A stretch of DNA of 64,000 nucleotides from Ministeria vibrans ATCC 50519 (lineage: Eukaryota > Protista > Filasterea), in contig CALSCP010001670.1 in NCBI GenBank assembly GCA_943704425.1, forward strand, positions 1 to 64,000, written 5' to 3'. The notes under the pieces are model-generated. The model was not told where the DNA came from and ran no database searches. It saw nothing but the letters and a program-made list of their open reading frames with translations. Every line of letters begins with the position of its first letter. The first letter of the stretch is position 1. A program made the position numbers and the translations under genes. Positions 43,995-51,463 of the stretch are shown in pieces.

Positions 43995-46209
43995 ATGAGC
44001 TCTTCAAAAAGCCCTCCAAATTTTTGTACAGACTGAGAGTGGTGTTTTTTTTTCCTTCTTTTTTCATTTTCGGTCCATTTCGTTTTTCCGCGTCGCTCTC
44101 TTTCCGCTGCCGTTCCCTCGCGCCATCCTTCATACTGTGCGACTTATCCGTCTCTGTTTTCTTCTTGTTCGTCTCTCTCGCTCGCTCTCTGCAGCGTTTG
44201 ACTACGTTTCGCGCAATCCGGTCGATGACGAGCTTCTGTGCCACATTTGCCATCAGCCGCTCGTTGACCCGCGAATGCTCGCCTGCGAGCACATGTTCTG
44301 CGCCGTGTGCCTGCAAAGCGCCCTCGCCCAGAAGCTCACGTGCCCCGTCGATCGGAAGCCCGTCGTGCCGCAGGAAGACGTCAAGCCTGTGGCGAGTGCC
44401 TTCCTGAAACTACTGGGCAAGTCCAAAGTGTACTGCTCGAACAAAGCCAGCGGATGCGACTGGGTTGGGCCTCGCAGCAATCTGCTGACGGACCATTTGC
44501 CCGGCTGTGATCGGACGCCATGTGCCCATCGCGAGGCGGGGTGCAGCTGGACCGGGCGAGCACAGGCGATGGCGGCACATGTTGCGTCTGACTGTGTCGC
44601 CGCACCCGTCGCCTGTCCACACGTCCGCGACGGTTGCACAAAGAAGGTGCGACGAGACGCACTGGAGGAACACGAAGTGTCGTGTGAAGTTGGCGCGCGA
44701 GTGCACGCGGAGGCGATGGTGCGCGAAGAGGCGGAGCGAGCGGAGGCCAAGGCGGCGGCGGTACGAGAGGCGCACGAACGACGTGTCGAGGCGCGCAAGG
44801 CGCTCTGCAGCCGACTCAACCCCAAGAGTACAGAAGTGGTGACGATGAACGTTGGCGGACGTGTCTTTCAGACTTCCCTTGCGACACTGCGTGGCGAGTC
44901 AGAGTCAGTGTTGGCGCAGCTGTTTGCCTCGGGTGAGGTGGACGTGCTGGAGCGCGACGAGACAGGCCGCGTCTTCCTCGACTGCGACCCGGACGCGTTT
45001 GCGCTTGTGTTGCGGTGGTTGCGCGCAGGAGTGGTTCCGATTGTCACGAGCGAGACGACACTTGACAATGTCATGAGTCTTGCGCGTCTGCTGGACCTCG
45101 ACCGACTTGTGGTTGGCCTCGGCGGTGAGCTGAGTGATGACGAGGCGGAGGATGAAGAGGAGAAGGGTATGTCGACGGTGGTTTCTGTATCTGCATCTGC
45201 ACGCACACGTGTTACACCGATCTCAACGAATGTACCGGTGAGGGCGGTGCCGCGTGCAAAGACACAGCGCCAGCAGATGGAGTTGCTTCAGCTGATTGCT
45301 TTGTTCAAAAGTGGTCAGCAACAGGTGTCGCTGGCTGGCATGGACCTGCGTGGGTACCACTTGGCTGGCATGGACCTCTCGTGTGGCAAGAAAGGGGCGT
45401 GTCTGCGCGGTGCAGTGTTGGCGAACATGGACCTGTCGGGTGTGCAGCTCAAGGGTGCAGACTTATGCAATGTTGATCTCGGTGGTTGCACGCTGAGCGG
45501 CGCCGATTTGAGTGATGCGAACATGACTGATTCAACCCTCAATGGTGCAGACCTGACGGGTGCGAACCTCACTGGCGCGACGATTGACTGGTCGCGCATG
45601 GCCAACACACTCACTGGAGTCAATCTGTCAGGTCATGACCTCTCAGGCGTTGACTTGTCCTCGAAGGATTTGACTGGCGCGAACCTCACTGGCGCGACGA
45701 TTGACTGGTCGCGCATGGCCAACACACTCACTGGAGTCAATCTGTCAGGTCATGACCTCTCAGGCGTTGACTTGTCCTCGAAGGATTTGACTGGCGCGAA
45801 CCTCACTGGCGCGAACCTCACTGGCGCGAACCTCACTGGCGCGAACCTCACTGGCGCGACGATTGACTGGTCGCGCATGCCTAACACACTCACTGGAGTC
45901 AATCTGTCAGGTCATGACCTCTCAGGCGTTGACTTGTCCTCGAAGGATTTGACTGGCGCGAACCTCACTGGCGCGAACCTCACTGGCGCGAACCTCACTG
46001 GCGCAATTCTTACCAACGCAAATCTCACCAACGCAACTGTGACAAATGTGACACCTCCTTCGCCACTTACATGTCCATGGGGTTGTGGCCCTGCCACTGT
46101 AATTAAAATCACTGTCAAGAGTTCCTCCCGAAGTCAAAACGATCAACGCGTGAGCTACGGTTGGTTGTGGGGCACTTGTGCCTCTCACTCAAACAACACT
46201 TGTTACTAA
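43995..46209 (+). CDS. RING + TRAF-type zinc fingers + KCTD-type BTB + pentapeptide repeats
   Basis: CHICHQP..CEHMFCAVC..CPVDR; CSNKASGCDW; VVTMNVGGRVFQTSLATL...FLDCDPDAFALVLRWLR; A(D/N)Lxx repeats. Confidence 0.88.
45562..46003 (+). repeat. Coding tandem repeats: three 117-bp units plus 15-bp gcgaacctcactggc units
   Basis: ANLTGATIDWSRM(A/P)NTLTGVNLSGHDLSGVDLSSKDLTG x3, near-identical at DNA level, with interspersed ANLTG copies. Confidence 0.9.
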
Positions 46210-46497: not shown

Positions 46498-49009
46498 TTA
46501 CGCGGAAATACCCGCAAAACCCAAAAGAAGGCTCAACGTGTCTGACGAGAGAACGCGGCGCGAAAGAGGCGGGACATAGTCAATAGCAATGACGATAAAG
46601 CGGGCCAGGGGGGTGGTGAAGTAAGTGGCAAGCCAGGAGTCGAGGGGAAGCTGGAAGATGAGGTGGGAGATAAGCAGGGCGATGACGTCCTCCTCGTCGA
46701 CGGGGACACCCGACTTGCGCGACTCCTCCAGCAGTGCATCGAGCGCCGCGGTGTACTTCTCAAGTGGAAGCAAATCACGATCAGTCAGTGTACGCACAAT
46801 GGCGTTCATGGGAAGAAGCTTGCCAATGAAGGCGGGGAGACCACTCTCAAGGATTTCCAGGCGCGCCATGTCGCGGTTGTCCTGCCACAAAGGCGCAAAG
46901 ATGCTGCGGCACAAATTTTCACCCACAGCACAAACAGCAATGGATGAGACCAGTGTGTCATCCACCATGAAACGTCCTAAAAAGCAGAAGAGGAGATGAG
47001 GAAGAGAGTGGGAGAGATCGAGAAAGAGAGTTAGAGAAAGAACAACCATCTACTGAAATTTTTCCACACCTGCTTTGGAAACAACGGGAGAAAAGCGACC
47101 GGTCTGGATGGATCGTTCAAGAGACAAAATCTCGTGGAGCACAAGATCAGACGCGTACGTGGCGTTGACAGAGTCGATGGCAACGCGATCGCCGAGCTGG
47201 AGACGATCGGCAAAGGTGAAGCAGCCAGCGAGGGTGGGGTGGGGCATGGGCTTAAGGCGGGCGTCGCGCTGGTCAACGGGACGGCAGGTGGACGACGCAG
47301 GGTTGGCAGGAACAACGTAAAGAAGATGGTCGGGGGCAATGGAGAGCGACGACGTGTGCGTGCGGATTGTGATGTATTCGCTCTGCTTCGCGTGGTCCTG
47401 GTGGATGAAGGCGCGCACTTCACACGAGCCCATGCGCTGAGTGTCCTCCTCGATGCAGCGAATGCGCTGTCCAATACGCAGGTGGTCTATTGTGATTGTT
47501 ACACCACTATCCAGCATCACAGAGGCAGATGCAGGGAAGCACTCAATATTGCTAAACTCAAAAAGGTGCGCTGCAAAAAATGGAATACGTCGTAATAAAA
47601 ATAATTATATAATGCCACAGACGGGTTTTTGTTCGTACGACAACCGGGAATTTGGACAGTGTTGGCGCTATTCTGACAGCGTGTGGTCGGGAAAAAGCGT
47701 CTAAAACACAATGTAGTCATGAGTACCAATGCCAATATAATTTCTGCTCCATTACGTATCCCCCGAGCACACAGGAATTTCAAACAGTGCCGACTTCAAG
47801 ACTGCTTTCTTCGTTGCAATATCCGTCGCAGTGAGAGTGTATGGCTCTGACACGAGAGTGCTGTGATTTCCTGTGTCGCATCCGGCGAATGTGACACCGC
47901 TCAAGGAAGACAAATCGGCAATGGTTGCGACGGTGTCTGTTGTCGAAGCACACTTGAGAGTGTCACCCGCGCTGAGGCCACTGTCCGGTAGCTCCACAGT
48001 CCACTCGCCGTAGTCAACCTGGGTGGTATCCGTCGGAGAATCGTCAACTATGAGGAATTCGGCGGTGTTGTGCTGATTGCTTGTGGAGGACCGCTGTTTG
48101 ATGACAGTGCAAGTGCCGCCTGTGTCAAGAGTGACTTCGTCTCCAGAGGCAATCACCTCGCCACCGCCCAAGTAGTAGCAGCCGCAGTGTGCGGATGCTT
48201 CCATGCGAAAGTCGTGGTCATCGAAGAACACCACGCCCACAGACGAGAGGGACACCTCATCTGAGCATAACATAAAATACCAATCATAGTAAATTAGTAA
48301 TATTAGGAGAGGGTGAAGAAGAGCCCACTATTAATTTCAATTTATTATCCAAACGAAACGTCCACAGCACAATTAGCTCAGAAATAATAAGATGAGAAAA
48401 TTGTTGTAACTGAAATGTTTGCGCAAAAGACGAACGCGGAAGAAACCCGAAAACGATTAGGCAGAGCTCAGTCAGCTCAGTCAGCTCAAACGTCAGTCGT
48501 CACAAACCCACCAAAACAGAGTGAAAAACCGTAAATGCAGAAAATAAATTTAGAAAGCAGATATAAGAAATCATTTTTTGGGATTGGACGTGCAATGCCA
48601 TGAGGAAGAGTTAACGGCATTTGACGCAATAGAGAGGTGCATGTGTGCAATTTATATCTATGAGGGCGCCAGCGTGGCTCGTACCTGGAGCCGCTTGGGC
48701 GTACGCCTGGAGAGAGATTACAAAAATGTCACTTGCAACTTCTGTCGATGTCGCGAGACCAAAGGCATCATCCGCACTGCTCAGCGGCTGAATAGAGTCT
48801 CCAGCCGACGAGAACTGGGGAGTCAACGAGCCAGAGCAAAAGAGGGTCATTTCGCTGTATTTTCAACGGGTGTGAGAATAAGCCATAATTATATAAGGGA
48901 GATCGCGTGTCTCAACGAACCATCGAGAAAAGCTCTTCCCCCAAGCTCCCTGCACCGTGATAAGAGCAATAAGAATAGGCGCAATAGAGAGAGTAGTGTG
49001 CGTCATCAT
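46498..49009 (-). CDS. Secreted Hedgehog-type Hint (Hog) domain precursor with an unrecognised N-terminal domain
   Basis: Phase-consistent GT-AG exons 49009-48921, 48854-48685, 48260-47756, 47700-47639, 47570-47070, 46976-46498. Signal peptide; CFPASASVMLDSG..I..LRIGQRI, LSIAPDHLLYV, FADRLQLGDRV, GRFSPV..GRFMVDDTLVSS, SRR-like ENLCRSIFAPL. Confidence 0.82.
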
Positions 49010-49103
49010 GCCAGATTGAATGAAGCGAACACAAACGAAAAANNNNNNNNTATTATTTTTAATTTATTATTTGGTCACTCATTTTTTTTTCTATTCAACG
49101 ACT

Positions 49104-51463
<2,360 letters not shown>

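Follow-up and report, generated by a model that had tools for sequence, protein, structure and literature searches.

The 64,000-nucleotide (nt) stretch of Ministeria vibrans ATCC 50519 DNA analyzed here (positions 1 to 64,000 of contig CALSCP010001670.1, assembly GCA_943704425.1; hereafter the window) carries a minus-strand gene at 49009-46498 that is transcribed and spliced as six exons and that, judged from its sequence, belongs to the Hog family. The encoded protein begins with a signal-peptide-like segment, followed by an N-terminal domain that we call the cargo (residues 25-285), a Hedgehog-type Hint module (residues 286-457), and a C-terminal region (residues 458-601). We consider it likely that this protein is a secreted Hog precursor that cleaves itself between Glu285 and Cys286 and releases a lineage-specific cargo, with His332 as the general base and with processing that is probably slowed.

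Six exons are joined in transcripts

The original prediction, made from the DNA alone, was that six exons splice in frame and that annotation based on open reading frames (ORFs) breaks the gene into fragments. Both statements were borne out. We read the minus strand again, translated 49300-46300 in three frames, and obtained exons that join in frame over 1806 nt (601 codons, including the TAA stop). Exon 1 (49009-48921, 89 nt) holds the start codon and the signal-peptide-like segment. The cargo begins in exon 2 (48854-48685, 170 nt; residues 30-87), has its main part in exon 3 (48260-47756, 505 nt; residues 87-255), and ends through exon 4 (47700-47639, 62 nt; residues 255-276, with two Cys) and the first nine residues of exon 5 (47570-47070, 501 nt). 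The rest of exon 5 encodes the Hint module from Cys286 onward, and exon 6 (46976-46498, 479 nt, including the TAA at 46500-46498) completes the protein. Introns 1 to 5 measure 66, 424, 55, 68, and 93 nt; all are GT..AG, and their G+C content (32-41%) is below that of the exons. By arithmetic on the exon lengths, the junctions fall in the codons of Cys30, Asp87, Thr255, Pro276, and Gly443.

We looked for the splice joints in contigs of runs X1, X4, and X11 (polyA RNA-Seq, marine metatranscriptome), which come from three independent RNA studies, and in contigs of run X18. The RNA-type runs hold 0.57-0.69 of the words sampled from the window, approximately its exonic share; X18 and X19 hold 0.94, approximately the whole stretch. 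The kind of run is not recorded for X18 and X19, and X18 was treated as a DNA run. All five joints were present in the RNA-type contigs at exactly the predicted bases, reading CT..AC on the plus strand: 46976|47070 in X1 and X4, 47570|47639 and 47700|47756 in X1, X4, and X11, 48260|48685 in RNA contigs, and 48854|48921 in RNA contigs that reach 49004-49016. None of the five was found in the contigs of X18. One 1520-nt contig of X4 joins exons 6, 5, 4, and 3, and one 841-nt contig of X1 joins exons 1 to 4 with 20 nt of exon 5. Therefore, the N-terminal exons and the Hint exon lie on one transcript. Depth in X1 is zero over 49016-49112, and thus the gene is separate from its upstream neighbor. 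These are contigs rather than reads, and they show the presence of a transcript and not its expression level. Across exons 5 and 6, the window and the X1 contigs differ at four positions, all of them synonymous third-position changes.

The Hint module and its active site

Taken by itself, exon 5 gave a match to the Pfam family Hint (PF01079) that covers profile positions 11-146 of 213 and scores 68.6 bits (cut-off, 29.7; E 7.7e-19). A match of this strength is not expected by chance, and it confirms the predicted assignment to Hint. Two other Hint subfamilies remained below threshold for this exon (Vint, 16.4 bits with a cut-off of 27; Hint_2, 13.7 bits with a cut-off of 28.4), and no intein family was among its Pfam matches. 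Among solved structures, the best match was human SHH (7e2i; E 8e-06), together with Drosophila Hh-C (6tyy and 1at0). The module starts as …NIE|CFPASASV…, directly after the cargo. Its first residue aligns to C1 of 1at0 and 6tyy, and the exon lengths place this Cys at residue 286, codon 47541-47539, where the nucleophile had been predicted. According to alignments A2 and A6, the module runs on into exon 6, whose first part (46976-46933) encodes the final Hint strands and motif J.

We then compared the five Hedgehog active-site positions, C1, D46, T69, H72, and C143 as numbered in PMC12054796, which were placed by the structure alignments and by A2 and A6. C1 (Cys286) and H72 (His357, codon 47328-47326) are kept. 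The sterol-activating D46 is replaced by His332 (47403-47401), T69 by Ala354 (47337-47335), and C143 by Ser454 (46944-46942); the TXXH motif accordingly reads APDH, and motif J reads SSIA instead of SCYA. His332 aligns with the His of the engineered D46H structure 6tyy. In Drosophila HhC, this change (D303H) preserves structure and activity and widens the range of sterols (PMC9163320, PMC8529194), and the D46H variant retains autoprocessing activity (PMC9163320, PMC12054796). Many protist Hogs have Ser, Thr, or Asp in place of the motif-J Cys (PMC2362128). By its residues, then, the protein is a member of the Hog family, with the Hint profile and Cys1 present and TXXH half present (the His is kept, and the Thr has become Ala). 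It is not Hedgehog proper, as it is without the Hedge domain, Asp46, C143, and the HPR motif of the C-terminal region.

Paralogs and environmental relatives

The M. vibrans genome (29.7 Mb, 2860 contigs) contains at least six PF01079 loci. One of these, L001 (G000:C637:464-4018), has a canonical Hedgehog-like Hog domain, with its Hint at 1486-2082 on the minus strand scoring 121.7 bits. It carries FLD, VTPLH, SCYA, and HHLAHLSLAPLR, that is, all five Hedgehog active-site residues and the HPR motif (HxxAHxxxAPLR), and it is a useful internal comparison for sterol transfer.

Three other loci, L002 (G000:C2781), L003 (C2124), and L005 (C2104), form a subfamily with the Hog gene of the window, at 35-38% identity in Hint. 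Members share a Cys-containing insert in Hint (…TCRPV…PH…C.T.A.R…GDR), Ser at C143, a GE.LC…PL motif, and a long helical C-terminal domain, and an intron position inside Hint is common to this gene, L003, and L005. All three paralogs have Asp at D46 and Ser at T69; compared with these, both residues have changed in this gene. P0004, a full, transcript-derived JGI protein of 573 residues from a contig of 1880 nt, is the counterpart of L002. Its layout is alike: a signal peptide, a Cys-containing, Ser/Thr-rich cargo of about 250 residues, Hint, and a helical tail. In its relative P0005, which comes from an ENA metagenome, the C-terminal domain is retained with 76% identity. P0004 and L005 have similar cargo domains (alignment A4), which are unrelated to the cargo of this gene. 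The upstream parts of L002 and L003 contain long runs of N.

Five environmental Hog relatives from metagenome contigs were aligned as well. His occupies the D46 column (F.HRD) in four of the five, Thr or Ser the T69 column in all five, and His the H72 column in all five, while the C143 column holds Cys, Ser, Thr, Ser, and Ala. The relatives with 29-33% identity (L009-L011 and L014) read F(G/T)HRD and so carry His naturally at the D46 position. In L009 and L010, the N terminus is short and membrane anchored, and there is no large cargo domain. Judged by these alignments, protist Hog domains commonly have His at D46 or Ser at C143, whereas Ala at T69 is unusual.

The protein relative search sees proteins of 0.55-1.75 times the query length, and exon-sized queries cannot find full-length relatives in it. 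Exon 5 returned nothing within its length range of 91-290 amino acids (aa). Searches with L002 and with alignment A1 returned only P0004, P0005, and one weak green-algal Hog. The metagenome scan with exon 5 found nothing, and the scan with the subfamily alignment gave no relatives beyond those of 27-33% identity, except that one match reached 58% over residues 6-36 only.

The signal-peptide-like N terminus and the orphan cargo

Codons 1-24 (49009-48938) have the n/h/c layout of a signal peptide, with a cut predicted after AWG (AWG|K). Residues 1-19 reach a Kyte-Doolittle value of 1.72 over a 19-residue window. This putative signal peptide was judged by eye and by hydropathy, and it would direct the protein into the secretory pathway.

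The cargo has the Cys-containing, Ser/Thr/Asp-rich composition that had been described for it: ten Cys, 25% Ser plus Thr, 11-15% Asp plus Glu, very scarce Lys and Arg, and one N-glycosylation sequon. Exon 3 is acidic, has six Cys and 25% Ser plus Thr, and carries this sequon (NHS). Pfam and relative searches were run exon by exon, each exon as a separate query. At E values up to 1, the only Pfam match of exons 1 to 4 was CBM39, which was rejected as below threshold (13.2 bits with a cut-off of 25), and these exons gave no Hedge (HH_signal) domain. Neither exon 2 nor exon 3 has a paralog in the M. vibrans genome, where exon 3 matches only itself, and the cargo showed no similarity to the cargo domains of the paralogs by BLASTP or hhalign. 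Among 1.84 billion representative proteins, exon 3 matched its own ORF (173 aa) and, apart from that, only the repeat proteins P0002 and P0003. We rejected these two as compositional or motif artifacts, with one short query stretch matched many times in each, and a Pfam search of P0002 gave nothing coherent. In the ESM Atlas, the best score for exon 3 was 0.77. Its AF2 single-sequence model (pLDDT 35.6) is weakly beta-rich and too poor for a fold search. By all of these searches, the cargo is an orphan at the sequence level, in agreement with the proposal of a new, unassignable domain in place of Hedge; it is probably rich in beta strands. An orphan N terminus of this sort is known from the Hog genes of many protists, in which the region upstream of the Hog domain evolves faster than the Hog domain itself (Bürglin 2008, PMC2362128).

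An ORF with a protein sequence identical to that of the exon-3 ORF is present on a 1854-nt ENA metagenome scaffold (L008). Therefore, M. vibrans or a very close strain was present in at least one sequenced environmental sample.

The C-terminal region

The remainder of exon 6 (46932-46498) encodes an adduct-recognition-like region of about 145 residues with a partial motif K (…FAPLW). It had been predicted to combine the sequence ENLCRSIFAPL with a region resembling the sterol recognition region (SRR) of Hedgehog and a hydrophobic tail. That sequence is present (…LCRSIFAPLWQ…) and is followed by about 130 further, mostly helical residues. The tail, however, is only weakly hydrophobic: a single 19-residue window reaches a Kyte-Doolittle value of 1.62, which does not amount to a clear transmembrane segment. 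The distance from motif J to FAPL is 12 residues, compared with 11 in the canonical paralog L001, and this spacing supports the alignment with Hedgehog motif K. MAFFT placed the motif K stretch ambiguously (alignment A6). Compared with L001 and with the motif of PMC7906309, H..P.R reads R..P.W, so that only the Pro (and FA) is kept, His having become Arg and Arg having become Trp. The region is also about twice the length of an SRR (65-95 residues). Thus, the SRR-like character holds for the position of FAPL and not for the HPR residues or the length, and the term adduct-recognition region suits it better than sterol-recognition region. Because the His and Arg of the SRR motif are lost, any adduct could be something other than a sterol.

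An AF2 model of this region from four sequences is all helical, with eight helices (pLDDT 60; core, 65-82). The region is common to the paralogs L002/P0004 and L005 and to P0005. It had no Pfam match, its model had no Foldseek match in the PDB (best E 3.3), and the ESM Atlas gave no usable match. The best result of a VIA search, Z 5.6, is below the stated noise level for helical models, and saposin-like rows in that search (Z 4.4) were rejected as evidence.

Proposed self-cleavage and its alternatives

In the reading that we favor, the signal peptide would take the 601-residue precursor into the endoplasmic reticulum. With the help of His357, Cys286 would turn the peptide bond that links it to Glu285 into a thioester. 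His332, in the general-base position, and the helical C-terminal domain would then position a nucleophile, which would displace and release the cargo, possibly leaving an adduct on the cargo C terminus. This reading is supported because Cys1 and His72 are kept, because the four strain differences in exons 5 and 6 are all synonymous, and because the paralogs share the Hint insert and the helical C-terminal domain, with the same overall layout in P0004.

Several observations weigh against it. Ala stands at T69, where every aligned relative has Thr or Ser (alignments A2 and A6), and in Drosophila Hh the corresponding T326A change greatly reduces both the dithiothreitol-driven and the cholesterol-driven reaction (PMC9163320). 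C143, which has been proposed to carry a branched thioester and to be equivalent to the +1 nucleophile of inteins, is absent, and both C143A and C143D abolish SHH processing (PMC12054796). The residue preceding Cys286 is Glu and not Gly. Finally, no orthologue was found in the exon 5 protein search or the metagenome scans. Cleavage is probably slower here than in Hedgehog because of the Ala at T69.

The same observations could mean that the Hint module is degenerate and that the protein is a pseudo-enzyme, secreted or membrane associated but uncleaved, in which the Hint and helical domains serve as a structural or binding module. This would fit the crippling effect of T326A, the Glu at -1, and the missing C143, and also two further points: of the six genomic Hint loci and the five environmental relatives that were compared, only this gene has Ala at T69, and two catalytic positions differ from the gene's own paralogs (D to H and S to A). 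We nevertheless regard a pseudo-enzyme as unlikely. Cys1 and His72 are both indispensable for the acyl shift, and both are kept; replacing the latter in Drosophila Hh (H329A) gives a dead protein (PMC9163320). Strain variants number only four and are all synonymous, His at D46 and Ser at C143 are normal in protist Hogs (PMC2362128 and the alignment of relatives), and the full Hint profile still scores 68.6 bits.

If the precursor does cleave itself, we asked whether it could be a true sterol transferase like Hedgehog, with the C-terminal region as its SRR and the cargo sterol linked on the cell surface. FAPL at the canonical distance past motif J speaks for sterol transfer, as do the hydrophobic and amphipathic helices of the C-terminal region, and a His general base supports this reaction in Drosophila HhC with a broader sterol tolerance (PMC8529194, PMC9163320). 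However, human SHH needs the His and Arg of the HPR motif for cholesterolysis (PMC7906309), and this protein has Arg and Trp in their place. The length of about 145 residues and the ambiguous placement of motif K also count against an SRR, and a canonical Hog in which D, T, H, and C are retained together with HxxAHxxxAPLR exists separately in this genome (L001). Sterol transfer by this protein therefore seems improbable to us.

A more specific proposal, which we put forward as speculative and rate slightly lower again, is that the four-member subfamily (this gene, L002/P0004, L003, and L005) has a new eight-helix adduct-recognition domain in place of the short SRR. In this gene it would act together with a natural His base and with Ser at the branched-intermediate position to join a lineage-specific cargo with a new fold to a nucleophile that is not a canonical sterol but another lipid, a sugar, or water.

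That the gene model itself is an artifact, made of separate genes or of a pseudogene with ORF pieces in frame by chance, would suit the way prokaryote-style ORF callers split the gene and the fact that databases hold only the 173-aa exon-3 ORF, but we reject it as highly improbable in view of the five joints at exact GT..AG sites in RNA contigs from three independent studies, the single contigs that span exons 6 to 3 and 1 to 5, and the zero depth upstream of 49016.

Transcript variants and flanking sequence

In intron 2 (48684-48261, 424 nt), an X1 contig (record 5) covers 48311-48632 at a depth of 3.1, compared with 294.7 for the spliced form. On the plus strand it has a poly-T loose end at about 48311, approximately 30 nt downstream (on the minus strand) of an AATAAA. 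The contig has the appearance of a minor isoform that is polyadenylated within intron 2 near 48311 and that would truncate the protein after exon 2. The intron-2 contigs of X4 show three single-nucleotide polymorphisms and a 2-nt deletion at 48561.

The assembly has a gap of 8 N at 49043-49050, a short way upstream of the start codon, and the contigs of X18 break on either side of this gap with AT-rich loose ends (ATAATAAT…). Thus, the promoter and 5' untranslated region are incomplete in the assembly.

The convergent neighbor at 44137-46209 (plus strand) is a long ORF with an N terminus like a RING/TRAF-type zinc finger and a long run of near-identical pentapeptide-type repeats (…GANLTGANLTG…). 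We saw no sign of a functional link between this ORF and the Hog gene.

Discussion

The novelty of the precursor was at first overrated. Hog proteins with lineage-specific secreted N termini have been documented in alveolates, red algae, mosses, jakobids, haptophytes, cercozoans, cryptophytes, and choanoflagellates (Bürglin 2008, PMC2362128), and Hint/Hog genes are reported to be expressed in a marine filasterean (PMC12132279). Like these protist Hogs (PMC2362128), the protein described here has a signal-peptide-like segment, a Cys-containing orphan N terminus, a Hedgehog-type Hint, a motif-J Cys replaced by Ser, and a weakly conserved motif K. It is unlike them in its C-terminal region, which is about twice as long, predicted to form eight helices, and common only to its paralogs, and in the loss of the TXXH Thr to Ala. 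Hoglet of Monosiga ovata (Snell et al. 2006, cited in PMC2362128) is a secreted protein of a unicellular eukaryote that is released by a Hog domain and has a non-Hedge N terminus, much as proposed here. However, the N terminus of Hoglet resembles cellulose-binding domains, whereas here no carbohydrate-binding family passes threshold.

Animal HhC (1at0, 6tyy, and 7e2i) shares with this protein PF01079, Cys1, the His of TXXH, and the FAP of the first SRR helix, and His46 matches the active engineered D46H. The identity is low, and the differences are many: the protein has no Hedge domain, it has His at D46, Ala at T69, and Ser at C143, its HPR motif is reduced to the Pro, and its C-terminal domain is longer. 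The nematode Warthog, Groundhog, and Quahog proteins also combine a Hog domain and a non-SRR adduct recognition region with novel secreted N-terminal domains. They belong to another lineage, and Pfam found neither a Wart nor a Ground domain in this protein.

Nothing here alters what is known of the Hog family; the features that stand out are Ala at T69 and a helical C-terminal domain of increased length. With this analysis, one more Hog gene is verified by transcripts, in the genome of a marine protist where ORF-based annotation sees only fragments, and the orphan cargo is a further example of how readily Hog genes acquire new N termini. The gene is also a natural experiment in Hedgehog autoprocessing, in which the general base is a His, so far mainly an engineered state, the Thr of TXXH is lost, and the thiol of C143 has been exchanged for a hydroxyl. 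A comparison within one genome of this gene, its paralogs with Asp and Ser, and the canonical L001 could separate the residues needed for cleavage from those that govern the choice of adduct, and could show what the long helical C-terminal domain recognizes.

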